Positions 11,434 through 32,335 of a stretch of 64,000 bases of DNA are shown here, piece by piece. Numbering within the stretch: position 1 is the stretch's first letter; each line of letters starts with the position of its first letter. The translations under genes were made by a program, and so were the position numbers. The notes below the pieces were generated by a model, which had not been told where the DNA came from, searched no databases, and saw nothing but the letters and a program-made list of their open reading frames with translations. The stretch is taken from the sequence record NC_021529.2, one strand, 5' to 3'.

Positions 11434-11982
11434 ATGCCTATTGTAGCAGGTGATTTAAAATTTAATAAAAGTACTCATGTAGTATCAGCAGGTGTTGGGA
11501 ATGGAAACACCAACGAGCAGGAGATTGATTCTCTTGGTCTTGCTATCAGTGCGACTGAGCTTGTTTCTGGTGAACTTCACGGCCTATTCGATTCTGTGAT
11601 ATCTGACGAGGCACTTTTTGGACGAACTGAATATCGTCTGATCTATCTTCTGAACGATCATCCAACACTGACTCTATATGATGCTCGTGTGTTCATTTCA
11701 TCAAACACAATTTCTGCCAACTCTGAAATTGCAATTGGGTTTGACCCTGTAGCAGTTAACGGTGAGGACAGTTTGATTGCGTTAGCAGATGAAACAGATT
11801 CGACTACCCAACTTTCTGCCGTTACTTTCGGAACTCACTCGACGTTTGCAACTGGGTTGCTTGTTGGTGATTTGGCAGCAGGTGAACAGCGTGCGATTTG
11901 GGTTCGAAGAACAATCGACCCTAATGCTCCGGCGTCAAATGAATCAGCGACAATCACATTACGCGGTGACACTAACGCATAA
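11434..11982 (+). CDS. probable virion structural protein (182 aa), no T4 counterpart at this position
   Basis: Strong GGAG RBS, late context, beta-rich sequence (GLFDSVISDEALFGRTEYRLIYLLNDH...AIWVRRTI). Confidence 0.7.
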   Translation: MPIVAGDLKFNKSTHVVSAGVGNGNTNEQEIDSLGLAISATELVSGELHGLFDSVISDEALFGRTEYRLIYLLNDHPTLTLYDARVFISSNTISANSEIAIGFDPVAVNGEDSLIALADETDSTTQLSAVTFGTHSTFATGLLVGDLAAGEQRAIWVRRTIDPNAPASNESATITLRGDTNA

Positions 11983-19266: not shown

Positions 19267-19908
19267 ATGGAATTGCAACTATTAATTGAAGACTGGGGAT
19301 TGTCAAGCGGGTTAGCTGAGAGTCACGGTGAAAAGCCTCTTGTTGAAGCAAAACTGCCTAAAGAAAAGGGTGGTGACTTGTATATTGAAGGGATTTTCAT
19401 GCAATCGAATGTCGTTAACCGTAATGGTCGTCGATATCCGAAAAAAGTAATGGAATCTGCGGTATCTAAATACATTCAAGAGCAAGTAACGACGAATCAA
19501 GCTTTGGGTGAGCTTAATCATCCAAGTCGCTCAAACGTTGACCCTGCTGAAGCTGCAATTCGTATTACAGAATTGTGGTGGGACGGTGACAACGTAATGG
19601 GAAAAGCAATCGTACTAAATACTCCGAAGGGACAAATCGTTAGAGGACTAATCGAAGGCGGTTGGGTTCCTGGCGTGAGTTCACGAGGTCTTGGTTCAGT
19701 TAAACAAGTTGACGGAATCAACGAAGTGCAAGACTTTCGTCTTACAGTCGGCGTAGATGTTGTATGGGGCCCTAGTGCACCATCTGCATACGTCAAGCCA
19801 GTAACTGAGTCAAATGAGCCTGCTAAATCAGTGAAAACAGTCGAAATTACAGAAAGTAATGACGCTGAATTTGCGAAACTAGCGGAAACGTTAAAAACTC
19901 TCTTATAA
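19267..19908 (+). CDS. 21: prohead protease gp21
   Basis: NRNGRRYPK, LGELNHP (His), GVSSRGLGS (Ser), VWGPSAP. Confidence 0.97.
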   Translation: MELQLLIEDWGLSSGLAESHGEKPLVEAKLPKEKGGDLYIEGIFMQSNVVNRNGRRYPKKVMESAVSKYIQEQVTTNQALGELNHPSRSNVDPAEAAIRITELWWDGDNVMGKAIVLNTPKGQIVRGLIEGGWVPGVSSRGLGSVKQVDGINEVQDFRLTVGVDVVWGPSAPSAYVKPVTESNEPAKSVKTVEITESNDAEFAKLAETLKTLL

Positions 19909-25440: not shown

Positions 25441-25475
25441 TAAATAAACATGAATGAATAAATTTGGAGATTCAC

Positions 25476-25964
25476 ATGAGTCAATTGAAAACACATGCAG
25501 ATTCACTAACTAAAGCAGAACTAGATGAGTTTGCACAAGAGTTTTACGGCATTGAACTTGATCGTCGTAAATCAAAGGGCGCAATGACTAAAGCACTTAT
25601 CGAAGCTGCTGAAGACAAAACCCCGCTTAAACAACTTCCGTGGGAAGAGCTTCTTTTAGAAGAAACGCCTGAAGTTGTAGAAACACCAGCATCAGTTGAG
25701 CCAGTGGTTCAAGCTGTTGTTGTAGAACAAGACGCATCGTTTGTTCCGCTACCGCTATCGTTTAGACGTGGCAAAGAACGTTTCATGATTGCAACCGATA
25801 CAGCAGTTAAGTCAGCGCAAGCTATTCTTGCTGATGAATCTACAATCAGTGACGCTAAAGAGTCTGATTTGCGTACCGTAAACTCTATCTTGCATTACGT
25901 TTCGCAAGACGGGCAGGTGCTAGTTCGCGAAACTCGAAATAGTCAATTTATCACAATCAAATAA
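25476..25964 (+). CDS. inh: inhibitor of prohead protease Inh
   Basis: ELDEFAQEFYGIELDRRKS N-domain; C-terminus ILHYVSQDGQVLVRETRNSQFITIK matches T4 Inh. Confidence 0.85.
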   Translation: MSQLKTHADSLTKAELDEFAQEFYGIELDRRKSKGAMTKALIEAAEDKTPLKQLPWEELLLEETPEVVETPASVEPVVQAVVVEQDASFVPLPLSFRRGKERFMIATDTAVKSAQAILADESTISDAKESDLRTVNSILHYVSQDGQVLVRETRNSQFITIK

Positions 25965-27545: not shown

Positions 27546-27615
27546 AATTTGCTCTCTTAGTTAGTCGATGTCGTTTCGATATAGAGATAATACGACTTTA
27601 TGGTGATAGTGTCAA
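27543..27615 (-). promoter_or_regulatory. early promoter plus conserved leader (copy 1)
   Basis: TTGACA-N17-TATTAT, then ATCGAAACGACATCGACTAACTAAGAGAGCAAATTATG. Confidence 0.85.
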
Positions 27616-27653
27616 TAGGTAAAAACAAAAAAGCGCAAATAATGCGCTTTTCT

Positions 27654-28574
27654 TTACTTACGAATGAAATATGTCTTAGTTGAAGCTCGATTCTCGACTG
27701 TCTTGGTAGTGTAGTCTGTCAGGGATGCTGCATAACGTCGTACAAGACGATTGTACAGCTTTACTCTAGAATCTGACCCACTCTCAATGTTGCGTTCAGC
27801 ACTGAAATAAATTTGCTCTGGCTCACGCTCATCGATGAATTCTTTCATACCGCTCATCACTGTTGCGAATACACCATACATATTACCAGCACCAGTTGCG
27901 CGATACGTGTAATCACCGTCTGCATTTTTACCCAAGAACACAACTTCCCATGCATCTTTGTTAGATTGATACCCAATATGAATTGCATAGCCTTCGCCGT
28001 TAACTTTGAATGTACCGCCCCAGCTAGTTATGCTCTTTTCAACCCAATGTATTTTTGATGGTTTGTCGAATGCTTCAGTCAAATTAACAGATGATAACCA
28101 CTCTTTCCAAGTCTTCTTGTTGCCGATTTTAGCAAATGGAATGTCGTCATTATCCAACCACGTAGCTGAACGATCATAAGACTGAGTAGTGTTGAACCCA
28201 CGATAATCATCACCAACCCATAGCCATTTATGATGCCAGATTTGATTGACTTGACGTGGCTTAGATACAACACCATCTTTATAAGTAATCATCAACCCCG
28301 CTGCTGGTTCTTGAACAGTGTCAAACTCAACTGAGTCATAGAACGCAATCCCGCCTTTCTTGTAGTCAATGCGTACAATATTTGGCGTGAATTGTGGGTT
28401 TGCAATCGAAACTTGTGTACGAGCATCAGCAACCATTTGCTTAAACTCGTCTGGCACGTAATCAATATGAACGTATAATGATCCGCCGATGTCTTTACCG
28501 ACTCCCCATTTACTTCTCTTGACTGCACTACCCTTTCTAGTTTTTAACGGAGCACGCTCAAATATGATAGTCAT
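27654..28574 (-). CDS. two-domain putative internal head protein (306 aa)
   Basis: N-terminal MTIIFE and internal NLTE fit the gp21 cleavage consensus (L/I/F-x-E); late operon; C-domain EAFD...TGAGNMYGVFATV...SRVKLYNRLVRRY. Confidence 0.55.
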   Translation of the reverse strand: MTIIFERAPLKTRKGSAVKRSKWGVGKDIGGSLYVHIDYVPDEFKQMVADARTQVSIANPQFTPNIVRIDYKKGGIAFYDSVEFDTVQEPAAGLMITYKDGVVSKPRQVNQIWHHKWLWVGDDYRGFNTTQSYDRSATWLDNDDIPFAKIGNKKTWKEWLSSVNLTEAFDKPSKIHWVEKSITSWGGTFKVNGEGYAIHIGYQSNKDAWEVVFLGKNADGDYTYRATGAGNMYGVFATVMSGMKEFIDEREPEQIYFSAERNIESGSDSRVKLYNRLVRRYAASLTDYTTKTVENRASTKTYFIRK

Positions 28575-29164
28575 TAGCGCGCCTCGTTAGTGATATTTCG
28601 GATCATGCGTACTGCGTACTGAGTATCGCCGACAATAGCTGCTGACGCTGCTTTATCAACATAGAATGTACTGTCTTCGATCATGTTCAAGTGATGATAT
28701 ATTTCGCGGAAGTCGTGACGATCATACTCTTTCGTATTGAAACGAAGAGCACCAGCTTGTTTGTCATCATCGTGAACACGCTTGTATTCATCAACAACTC
28801 GAATCATTTCGTTTGCGTATTTCTTCATTTCCATGTTATCAAGTTTTAGACGCTTTGCTGCTGTAATAACTTCGTCGCGAGGTCTGTCAAGTTCAATTGC
28901 ATCTTTCAAAATGTTCATACTGTGAATCGTATCGATTGCAGCCTTTTCCATTCTGAATTTGTGCTGTTCTAACGTTCGGTTATGTTTCTTCAGTTCACCA
29001 GTTGCAGTCGCGCCAGCAATCAACCCAGCGAATACTCCCCAGAAACCACCTCTACGCTGTAGGCGTTTTTTAACTTCGCCTTTAGACCCAGATGTCATTG
29101 CTTGAAATTGTGACCATACACCACTTTTTTTAGCTCTGTCTGCTTCTGTTAAAAATTCAATCAT
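28574..29164 (-). CDS. putative internal head protein with a Gly-rich hydrophobic segment (196 aa)
   Basis: MIEFLTE-type leader; GGFWGVFAGLIAGATATG followed by coiled coil; late promoter TCTAAATA at 29191-29198 (minus). Confidence 0.55.
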   Translation of the reverse strand: MIEFLTEADRAKKSGVWSQFQAMTSGSKGEVKKRLQRRGGFWGVFAGLIAGATATGELKKHNRTLEQHKFRMEKAAIDTIHSMNILKDAIELDRPRDEVITAAKRLKLDNMEMKKYANEMIRVVDEYKRVHDDDKQAGALRFNTKEYDRHDFREIYHHLNMIEDSTFYVDKAASAAIVGDTQYAVRMIRNITNEAR

Positions 29165-29232
29165 AGTTTTAACCCCTTAGTAGTTTATTATATTTAGAGT
29201 CAAAACAAAAAGACGACCGAAGTCGTCTTAGT

Positions 29233-30056: not shown

Positions 30057-30533
30057 TTACCTCAAATAAGTGAAACTGTTTGAATTGCGCTCATGAACTA
30101 GTAGCTCACCACGAATATTAACCCAATATTCAATAGTTTTCAGATCATACGAGTCACGACGACCTATATGCCAGTCATGAATTACATCAGCGGTTAGCGG
30201 TTGATATACCTCATCACCTTTGCGATATGACGGCATCCATTTTGGCTTGAATTCATCTTCGTCACCTAACGGGCAATCTAGTTTAATAGTCGTTAAATCG
30301 ACTTCAGACGCAATATCAGCGTCTTTAATTGGAATAGCGACTAATTCATCGGGTGTTTCTAACTTCTGCTCAGAATCGCTTACAGCAAGTTCTATCGGCT
30401 CATAGTCTTCATGTTCAAGAAGTGCTTCAATCATCTTACTTTTTGTAAGCGTGTTATCAAGCTCGATGTCAAAATGTTCTTTTGCGAATTCAGCGACGCC
30501 TCGCTTAGTTTGTTTTTTTAGAAAATCAATCAT
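30057..30533 (-). CDS. Inh paralog (158 aa)
   Basis: VAEFAKEHFDIELDNTLTKSKMIEAL N-domain and YWVNIRGELLVHERNSNSFTYLR C-terminus. Confidence 0.7.
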   Translation of the reverse strand: MIDFLKKQTKRGVAEFAKEHFDIELDNTLTKSKMIEALLEHEDYEPIELAVSDSEQKLETPDELVAIPIKDADIASEVDLTTIKLDCPLGDEDEFKPKWMPSYRKGDEVYQPLTADVIHDWHIGRRDSYDLKTIEYWVNIRGELLVHERNSNSFTYLR

Positions 30534-30747
30534 ACATCACCTCAAAATTTAACGTCACCCATATATTTTCATTTAGATCGAAGAAAGTGATCGTGGATGT
30601 GCTCGTTTCGTTCTTTCTCATTTCAGATCTATTTGTGTCTAGAACCGGTAAATAGAATTTACACAATGTCCCATGGTATTTTTTGTCGCCTACAGAGAAT
30701 TTATGACAACCCTCTTCTAGGATTTTCAGAATTTCATTTCGATTCAT
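30526..30747 (-). CDS. small hypothetical protein (73 aa), SH3/WYL-like motif
   Basis: GAGG RBS; TITFFDLNENIWVTL. Confidence 0.5.
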   Translation of the reverse strand: MNRNEILKILEEGCHKFSVGDKKYHGTLCKFYLPVLDTNRSEMRKNETSTSTITFFDLNENIWVTLNFEVMYD

Positions 30748-30761
30748 TGATTTCGTGCCTC

Positions 30762-30787
30762 TATAAATACAGTTATACATATTTAGA
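30762..30787. promoter_or_regulatory. pair of late promoters on opposite strands
   Basis: TATAAATA (+, 30762-30769) toward uvsW; TCTAAATA (-, 30780-30787) toward 30747. Confidence 0.7.
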
Positions 30788-30811
30788 CAAAACTCGCATA
30801 GAGAGAAAATC

Positions 30812-32335
30812 ATGACAGATATTAAAATTGAATATTTTGACGAGAGTTATGCGAGAGTCGTAGCCGAGCCAAGCATTACTCATGAAATGATTGATTACTT
30901 TTCATTTCTGACGGACGGATATAAATTCAACCCAAAATTCAAAATGGGAATTTGGGATGGGAAGATTCGACTAATGACGTATCAAGGTCTATTGCCATAT
31001 GGTCTTGTAGGTCAAGCTAAAGCGTTTGCATCAAATATGATGTACACAATTGAAGTTGACCCAATGCTTGATCCAGTCGAGAAGATTTCACGAGAAGACT
31101 TCGAAGCTTGGGTTGCGTCTCTTGACATATACGGTGGTAGTAATAAGATTGATCCGTATTGGTATCAAATGGATTCTGTGTTCCATGGCATCAACCATCA
31201 GCACAGTCTATTGAATCTGCCTACATCAGCAGGTAAATCATTGATTCAGTCATTGTTGACTCGTTGGTACTTGGAAAATCATGAGTGTCAAAAAGTACTG
31301 ATCATTGTACCGACTACTGCACTAGTTCAGCAAATGCGCGACGACTTTTTAGATTATCGTCTGTTCGAACATGACGACATCTATCAAATTCGTGGTGGGG
31401 TTGACCGTGACGCAATCGGCAACTGTAACATCGTCGTTTCGACGTGGCAATCTGCTGTTAAGCAAGATAAGTCATGGTTCGATCAGTTCGGGATGTTGCT
31501 AGTCGATGAATGTCACTTGGCAACGGGCAAGTCGTTAGACGGCATCATCAAGAAAATGACAAATTGTGAATTTAAAATCGGGCTGACTGGCTCACTTCGA
31601 GACGGCAAAGCGAATATTCTTCAGTATGTTGGTTCATTTGGTGATATTTTTAGACCTGTTTCAACTGCACAGCTAATGGAAGAAGGGCAAGTAACTGATC
31701 TAAAGATCAACTGTTTAATGCTTGAATACCCACAGCCATTACGCGACGAAATGAAGGGCACTTCATATCAAGAAGAAATGAAGTTCATTCTTGAGAACAA
31801 GCAGCGAAATCGTTACTTGATTAAGTTGGCGCATCATCTGAGTGCTAAGAAAGGCGAAAACACGCTACTGCTATTCAAGAACATCAAGCATGGCAAGCTG
31901 TTGTACGAAGCGTTGAAGAAAGTTTACGACCCTGAGAAAGTGTTCTACGTATCCGGTGAGACTAAAACTGATGATCGTACGCATGTGAAGAAGATTGCAG
32001 AAGATATTGATGGGGCTATCATCGTAGCATCATATGGTGTGTTCTCGACTGGTATCAGCATCAAGAAGCTACACAACGTAATATTTGCTCATCCAACGAA
32101 GAGTAAGATCATCAACTTGCAGTCGATTGGTCGTATTCTACGTAAGCATGGTAGCAAAGTTACTGCGAAGCTGTTTGATATCATAGACAACTTAGCAATC
32201 AAGTCGAAACGTGCGAACGCTAAGAAGCCATATACTCACGTAAATTACACAATGAAACATGGGATGCAGCGTATTGAGCTTTACAACCAAGAAGAATTTA
32301 AATACGCAGTCAAGAAAGTTGACTTAGCGGCATAA
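30812..32335 (+). CDS. uvsW: UvsW SF2 DNA helicase
   Basis: LPTSAGKS, LVDECH, GLTGS, QSIGRILR motifs. Confidence 0.97.
   Translation: MTDIKIEYFDESYARVVAEPSITHEMIDYFSFLTDGYKFNPKFKMGIWDGKIRLMTYQGLLPYGLVGQAKAFASNMMYTIEVDPMLDPVEKISREDFEAWVASLDIYGGSNKIDPYWYQMDSVFHGINHQHSLLNLPTSAGKSLIQSLLTRWYLENHECQKVLIIVPTTALVQQMRDDFLDYRLFEHDDIYQIRGGVDRDAIGNCNIVVSTWQSAVKQDKSWFDQFGMLLVDECHLATGKSLDGIIKKMTNCEFKIGLTGSLRDGKANILQYVGSFGDIFRPVSTAQLMEEGQVTDLKINCLMLEYPQPLRDEMKGTSYQEEMKFILENKQRNRYLIKLAHHLSAKKGENTLLLFKNIKHGKLLYEALKKVYDPEKVFYVSGETKTDDRTHVKKIAEDIDGAIIVASYGVFSTGISIKKLHNVIFAHPTKSKIINLQSIGRILRKHGSKVTAKLFDIIDNLAIKSKRANAKKPYTHVNYTMKHGMQRIELYNQEEFKYAVKKVDLAA

Follow-up and report, generated by a model that had tools for sequence, protein, structure and literature searches.

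ORF252 of Vibrio phage nt-1 is a two-module protein, probably packaged in the phage head and cleaved between its modules

The stretch of DNA analysed here (the window; 64,000 nucleotides of record NC_021529.2) corresponds to bases 124001-188000 of Vibrio phage nt-1 (HQ317393.2), a KVP40-like member of the T4-type phages (family Straboviridae). Within the window, open reading frame (ORF) 252 (VPFG_00035; 27654-28574, minus strand) encodes a protein of 306 residues, which is annotated as hypothetical and assigned to the function-unknown group PHROG 16075. ORF252 is composed of two modules that fold independently, and for each of them a family of stand-alone proteins exists as well. We propose that it is probably a late-expressed polyprotein of the internal head protein type, which is packaged in the capsid, cut in two and ejected with the DNA. 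The injected internal proteins of phage T4 are textbook anti-restriction cargo. An earlier note, made from the DNA letters, had already suggested a packaged, processed and ejected protein of two domains for this gene. The gene and the strings it quoted are present (MTIIFE at residues 1-6, GVGK at 24-27, FDTVQEP at 84-90, HHK at 114-116 and LTE at 165-167), the division into two domains was borne out by comparison with homologues, and packaging is supported by the leaders, the tandem gene arrays, the annotation of a homologue in phage PA5oct and a conserved variant of the late promoter, as described below.

The prohead protease gp21 of T4 cuts after the sequence L/I-X-E, and the first 10 residues of the internal protein IPIII form the capsid-targeting sequence (CTS), with positions 4 and 7 being important for targeting and 8 and 10 for processing (PMC9026906). 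The T-even internal proteins have nothing but this leader in common (PMC3012670). A gp21 is also encoded by nt-1 (annotated at 19267-19908 of the window). ORF252 begins with the leader MTIIFE (residues 1-6; 28557..28574, minus strand), which ends in I-F-E and is a putative propeptide with a gp21 site. A second putative gp21 site, L165-T166-E167 followed by AFD (28074..28082, minus strand), lies between the two modules. Both sites had been pointed out before, and both coincide with leader junctions of stand-alone homologues; the predicted N-termini after cutting are R7 and A168, the second having been given as A167. The two mature fragments would be basic, with isoelectric points (pI) of 9.2 and 9.0. 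Comparable L/I-x-E leaders are found at the start of gp68, gp21, gp22 and gp23 of nt-1.

The leader was compared across the family of the N-terminal module (N-module). The residue E6, with I, L or M at the P3 position, is invariant in 14 close homologues. An N-terminal extension is present in 39 of 60 stand-alone representatives of the N-module, with [LIVM]xE in 27 of the 39; the background for this motif is 0.0135 per position. The same motif was found in only 1 of 24 bacterial copies. Therefore, the leader motif is significant by its position and its conservation across homologues, together with its absence from nearly all bacterial copies. Many of these leaders are close to that of T4, such as MQNFKQYLTE, MLSFKEYLAE and MSFLAFLAE. 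In addition, two metagenomic T4-like loci (L009, 249-1593; L010, 2-1199) contain three consecutive genes, each starting with a near-canonical capsid-targeting leader.

The inter-module site is kept in all full-length orthologues and is duplicated in two of them, and the orthologue in phage 1.081.O consists of the N-module only, ending just past this site. Stand-alone homologues of the C-terminal module (C-module) start with MKTYKELLSE/LFD, MKTYNEFLTE/LFD and MRLQHYITE/LFD on IMG/VR contigs, and with MHLFE/LFD in gp135 of the Pseudomonas phage PA5oct (the slash marks the putative cut). Their junction xLxE/LFD is exactly in register with NLTE/AFD of nt-1. The PA5oct protein, of 141 residues, shares 35% identity with the C-module (tblastn E 3e-7), and its annotation describes a structural protein detected by electrospray ionization tandem mass spectrometry (ESI-MS/MS). 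Unlike the C-module of ORF252 it stands alone, in an unrelated jumbo phage, and its virion evidence is an annotation note; the main text of the PA5oct preprint, which reports 93 virion-associated products, makes no mention of gp135.

Similar to IPI, IPII, IPIII and Alt of T4, ORF252 thus has an N-terminal leader ending in L/I-x-E, would give small basic products and may be expressed late, and homologues of both of its modules carry near-canonical 10-residue leaders. The locus also resembles the T4 internal-protein loci, which are hyperplastic and hold unrelated cargo behind a conserved leader. On the other hand, ORF252 is related to IPI-III and Alt neither in sequence nor in fold, and its precursor differs in having a 6-residue leader and two cargo modules with an internal site. 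As two cargo modules are fused with a retained protease site between them, ORF252 can be regarded as a variant of the T4 internal-protein theme. In the proposed pathway, the leader MTIIFE would carry the precursor into the scaffolding core, where gp21 would cut after E6 and E167 to give a pair of basic products, about 18 and 16 kDa in size. Both fragments would remain with the packaged DNA, would be ejected into the host at infection and would act ahead of phage gene expression, most likely as counter-defence or takeover effectors.

Late expression of ORF252 is plausible from the signals around it. The gene is the second of a two-gene operon, whose first gene ORF253 (28574..29164, minus strand; 196 residues) has a stop codon overlapping the start of ORF252 (TAATG), making the two genes translationally coupled; a ribosome-binding site GAGG is located 8 nt 5' of the ORF252 start. 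The operon is bounded by two intrinsic terminators on the minus strand. One follows ORF254 and ends the upstream unit (29210..29229; an 8-pair stem, then a T run), and the other stands right behind the ORF252 stop and closes the operon (27627..27653; an 11-pair stem, then a T run). A late-promoter-like box, TCTAAATA (29191..29198, minus strand), is found 34 nt upstream of the ORF253 start codon. This box is invariant in nt-1, KVP40, 6E35.1a and 1.081.O, whereas its flanking bases vary, and it is also present 24-41 nt upstream of the window ORFs at 11434, 16514 and 52328. The related CTAAATA is found about 41 nt upstream of gp34, and several tail genes of the window, as well as gp22, gp23, uvsW and inh, are preceded at 18-50 nt by TATAAATA or a variant differing from it in one base. 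A closely related late-promoter consensus, (a/g)CTAAATA, in which (a/g)C replaces TA, is reported for phage Aeh1 (PMC2988020). The late operon assumed by the earlier note is thus consistent with a conserved promoter-like element, at the level of sequence only.

The product of ORF253 is probably another packaged protein, as judged from its start MIEFLTE/A. This start closely resembles the final seven residues of the T4 leader as well as the start of nt-1 gp68 (MKFITE/A). ORF253 is basic (pI 9.3), has a hydrophobic Gly-rich stretch near residue 40 and belongs to PHROG 16422, another function-unknown group; neither Pfam nor ESM Atlas provided a lead to it.

Several observations weigh against a packaged, late protein. 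The motif [LI]xE is present in the first 14 residues of 21 of the 81 window ORFs (26%), so that a lone N-terminal motif of this kind is not significant. The nt-1 leader has 6 residues, not 10, and nothing in it corresponds to CTS position 4. In close stand-alone N-module proteins the L-x-E is retained 2-3 residues before the stop codon; cleavage there would be of little use, and the motif may therefore be structural. The literature searched contained no virion proteome or N-terminal sequences for nt-1 or any KVP40-like phage. For expression, TCTAAATA is one base off the T4 consensus and is a candidate promoter only, and no RNA runs covering the ORF252 locus were found. In addition, the neighbouring ORF251 (392 residues, PHROG 2319) has a near-consensus sigma-70 promoter directly beyond the ORF252 terminator (27587-27615, minus strand; TTGACA, 17 nt, TATTAT). 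ORF251 is apparently an early gene set among late genes, and because of this strong promoter the minus-strand block is not uniformly late.

Some of these points would suit a late cytoplasmic protein that is never packaged, for instance an accessory factor of nucleic-acid modification or repair, in which the L/I-x-E sequences are structural or coincidental: the single-sequence motif is common, the leader is short and L-x-E persists at the extreme C-terminus of stand-alone N-modules. However, both module families have full T4-type leaders elsewhere, in tandem arrays typical of internal-protein loci, the bacterial copies are without such leaders, and the homologue in PA5oct carries a virion-protein annotation. 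We therefore regard an unpackaged protein as unlikely and retain the packaged polyprotein as the better account.

The N-module (residues 7-167; 28074..28556, minus strand) is an alpha/beta domain, which was modelled by AlphaFold with a mean predicted local distance difference test (pLDDT) score of 96 from an alignment of 49 sequences. A profile search against 1.84 billion representative proteins (clusters) placed at least 1,103 of them in the N-module family at E<=1e-3, and 176 at E<=1e-30. The domain occurs in stand-alone proteins, in fusions and as internal segments of proteins of 2,000-6,400 residues; it makes up the whole of proteins of 168-180 residues, including the product of the orthologous gene of phage 1.081.O. 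Pfam has no model covering the N-module, and the only match of the whole ORF252 in Pfam and NCBIfam scans was a sub-threshold one to DUF6934. No relative was found in the PDB when its sequences were searched with ORF252 or with the family profile. No convincing fold match was found among solved structures (best Foldseek E 0.2 against the PDB; best VIA-align Z 3.7), and a fold search of BFVD yielded one unnamed viral protein of 1,232 residues, which was not convincing either. For the KVP40 orthologue, KVP40.0371 (L003:3501-4463), the record credits a PF05480 match; the nt-1 protein has no such match in current Pfam, and the annotation looks outdated or spurious.

The residues K27, Y34, H36, E89, P90, H114, H115, K116, W117, Y124, F127 and S136 are invariant or nearly so in the N-module family, and from this pattern they look like a ligand-binding or catalytic site. 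A reading of the H-x-K motif as a phospholipase D (PLD/HKD) signature was dropped because the fold search yielded no PLD fold. A sulfur-binding domain or a PUA-like reader was also considered, and nothing of such kind was found among the matches. More speculatively, the N-module may bind a nucleic acid or a phosphate-bearing ligand through its K/H/H/K/Y/S cluster, as might the cellular copies that stand beside their methyltransferase.

Fusion partners of the N-module were collected from 66 mid-sized proteins. The commonest is Methyltransf_23 (8 proteins), followed by CCA-adding enzymes (2) and NFACT-R (2), and single cases include Tpt1, YafQ, ART-PolyVal, ParB_N, NlpC/P60 and DUF5662, among others. 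About 34 of the best 150 matches exceed 1,250 residues. One giant protein, P0039, combines the N-module with an Eco57I-type methylase, a ResIII/SNF2 helicase, LPD38 and a Methyltransf_23 domain immediately upstream of the N-module. Proteins of this kind, which run to 2,000-6,400 residues and in which ART-PolyVal also occurs, are polyvalent proteins as known from phages and conjugative elements (P1 DarB type). Polyvalent proteins are held to enter the host with the invading DNA, and solo forms of their domains are found near phage structural genes (Iyer et al. 2017, PMC5512222). Unlike them, ORF252 is small, its delivery would use the T4 CTS route, and its N-module has no Pfam LPD model. An uncultured phage contig (L007:3923-8041) has, in this order, genes for a DUF5662 protein, an OGG/HhH-GPD glycosylase, a Methyltransf_23 protein of 402 residues, an N-module protein and, last, a protein whose end is weakly colicin-D-like; this row of genes may be a nucleic-acid modification or repair cassette.

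The fusions to CCA-adding enzymes (PolyA_pol plus HD), NFACT-R, the Tpt1/KptA RNA 2'-phosphotransferase and the YafQ RNase raise the question of whether the N-module acts on RNA, such as tRNA or RNA ends, and helps to resist RNA-targeting defences, a role that is compatible with injection. The tRNA nucleotidyltransferase genes of nt-1 are located 4-5 kb from ORF252. However, the commonest partner is a Methyltransf_23-type methyltransferase, and the cellular copies stand beside helicase-nuclease, DndB-family and C5-methylase genes, which points to DNA. Moreover, polyvalent proteins freely mix DNA- and RNA-directed domains. We regard an RNA-directed role as unlikely.

The earlier note had compared the N-module with TIGR04096 (dnd_rel_methyl), the DNA phosphorothioation-associated putative methyltransferase family. 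At the family level the resemblance is correct. Of 49 stand-alone members of the N-module family, 27 match TIGR04096 and no other family (best E 3.9e-10), at about positions 320-463 of the 478-position model, and a structure search of ESM Atlas independently found three clusters named after the TIGR04096 family (TM-score 0.51-0.53). One protein, P0160, matches the N-module profile at E 1.9e-33 and scores 207 bits on TIGR04096. The resemblance was not found from the nt-1 sequence itself, as neither ORF252 nor its N-module gave a TIGR04096 match in NCBIfam, even at E<=10 or 0.01, and ORF252 does not reach the whole-protein cut-off of 150 bits, while true members score 512-592 bits. Based on the family members and the ESM Atlas clusters, the N-module is homologous to the C-terminal, non-catalytic third of TIGR04096. 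ORF252 has no SAM (S-adenosylmethionine) methyltransferase domain, with no methyltransferase Pfam match and no DYGCGHG-type motif I, in agreement with the earlier note.

In the two T4-like loci with three consecutive leader-bearing genes, the genes flanking the N-module gene encode small SAM methyltransferase-like proteins (VGAGLD or DYGSG; shared NVLNV(I/V)E), although the evidence for this assignment is weak. The arrangement suggests that a split TIGR04096-like enzyme may be packaged in some phages. A partner methyltransferase was sought in KVP40-like phages by tblastn with a fusion of the N-module and a methyltransferase; none was found, and a longer alignment to phage ValKK3 added no score.

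A scan of one genome per species revealed 49 bacterial loci, mostly from Planctomycetota, with stand-alone copies 31-39% identical to the nt-1 N-module. Of 16 loci surveyed, 8 have a neighbouring gene whose product, of about 441-605 residues, falls into a single protein family. Seven of these 8 neighbours were checked, and they have a DYGCG(H/R)G motif together with a divergent partial copy of the N-module domain. In all five genomes tested (L027, L033, L047, L025 and L041) the neighbour is a bona fide TIGR04096 member (512-592 bits). Planctomycetota therefore have a conserved gene pair, consisting of a TIGR04096 methyltransferase and a stand-alone paralogue of its own C-terminal domain (155-220 residues), and no description of this small partner was found in the literature searched. 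The N-module domain thus has a conserved cellular partnership with the TIGR04096 methyltransferase. Unlike these bacterial proteins, ORF252 is phage-borne, and no dnd genes are present at its locus.

The domain does have a link with phosphorothioation, although a loose one. Two of the 5 genomes carry a DndB-family gene within 2-5 kb of the pair, and DndB is absent from the other 3. Matches among the 128 ORFs neighbouring the bacterial copies include helicases (7), DndB (3), PAPS_reduct (2) and AAA_23 (2), plus nucleases. None of the helicase-nucleases adjoining the pairs reached the cut-off of TIGR04095 (dnd_restrict_1), but all 14 control genomes gave matches, so that this comparison is uninformative. 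In addition, no dnd context was seen on the contigs carrying P0160 and P0039.

These observations bear on the possible target in phosphorothioate-based defence that the earlier note had proposed. The injected N-module would then protect the phage DNA against phosphorothioate-dependent restriction (Dnd/Ssp type) or inhibit such restriction, for instance as a mimic of the host protein that partners the TIGR04096 methyltransferase. The homology to the accessory domain of TIGR04096, the adjoining TIGR04096 gene in five of five genomes, and the DndB, PAPS_reduct and AAA_23 genes nearby agree with such a target. For this specific action, however, the sole link is contextual, through the Planctomycetota pairs and the DndB-family genes near two of five. 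Three of the five genomes are without any DndB, the domain is far more widespread than dnd (1,103 clusters), and no partner methyltransferase was found by tblastn in KVP40-like phages. The target is also undercut by the occurrence of the domain in general polyvalent proteins and by its fusion to RNA-handling and other enzymes (CCA-adding enzymes, Tpt1, NFACT-R, YafQ and ART). We therefore consider a specific action against phosphorothioate restriction very unlikely. A wider form of the idea, in which the N-module is the phage copy of the small partner in a TIGR04096 module sometimes linked to Dnd genes, and is packaged and injected to subvert that module or a related DNA-modification defence as the DNA enters, is very unlikely as well.

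The C-module (residues 168-306; 27657..28073, minus strand), which the earlier note had left undescribed, is in its AlphaFold model (pLDDT 85) a minimal GNAT-like domain, lacking helices alpha1-alpha2. Foldseek gave nothing but GNATs among its top 50 matches (probability about 1, E 2e-3 to 1e-2). Superposition on GNATs by VIA-align covered about 110 of 141 residues with a root-mean-square deviation of 3-4 Å and Z scores of 7.5-8.6, a range where fold similarity alone proves little. The sequence R225-A-T-G-A-G230 (27885..27902, minus strand) corresponds to the GNAT motif A (R/Q-x-x-G-x-G/A) and stands just before a long helix (C-module positions 67-85), similar to the R-x-x-G-x-G before the central helix of the GNAT acyl-CoA N-acyltransferases. 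This motif is kept in nt-1/ValKK3-type proteins and stand-alone homologues and is lost, together with its Gly residues, in KVP40/6E35-type proteins. Unlike typical GNATs, the C-module has no Acetyltransf match in Pfam, the only match being DUF6934 at 19.1 bits against a cut-off of 27; a word-based homologue search with the C-module alone gave nothing, and its PHROG matches are 6387 and 27801. It is speculative that the C-module binds or transfers an acyl group.

The two modules differ in conservation. The C-module of nt-1 is 77% identical to the ValKK3-type and only about 26% identical to the KVP40/6E35-type, whereas the N-modules of KVP40/6E35-type phages are 92-93% identical to that of nt-1. 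Therefore, the C-module has been swapped or has diverged rapidly. The gp68-like leader and the head-gene neighbourhood with its two inh paralogues would also fit a mere component of the prohead core or scaffold, like gp67 and gp68, which is degraded or inert after maturation and has no role in the next host, but this is most improbable, since both modules are compact, well-folded and conserved domains that have enzyme-like invariant residues, the N-module is found again in polyvalent effectors and in capsid-less bacteria, and a C-module exchanged between lineages beside a constant N-module is typical of arms-race cargo and not of scaffolds.

The block containing ORF252 lies between head genes and uvsW, and its synteny is kept in KVP40, 6E35.1a and 1.081.O. 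The prohead-protease inhibitor Inh is represented by two paralogues (PHROG 8608; 25464-25964, plus strand, and 30057-30533, minus strand), which flank the ORF251-ORF255 part of it. For ORF257 (30526-30813, minus strand), the annotated start at 30813 means that a CTAAATA box (30780-30786, minus strand) falls within the gene. An alternative ATG at 30747 is located 33 nt downstream of this box and is a better fit to the shorter KVP40 orthologue. The late promoter of uvsW, TATAAATA (30762-30769, plus strand), lies opposite the ORF257 box within 60 bases, resulting in divergent late promoters.

To our knowledge, very few types of internal-protein cargo have known functions. ORF252 adds two probable cargo families, and a single gene of a culturable phage (nt-1, host Vibrio natriegens) allows both to be tested. 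The finding suggests that internal proteins can be polyproteins that are cut apart by the prohead protease. The N-module represents a large family without a name or a structural match, and it connects the capsid cargo of T4-type phages with polyvalent proteins and with the TIGR04096 gene pair. The conserved small partner gene of the TIGR04096 family bears on the role of that uncharacterised enzyme. If the N-module is an injected copy of this partner that subverts such a defence, it would represent a new fold as well as a class of injected anti-defence proteins that is itself new and is common to T4-type phages and polyvalent proteins.

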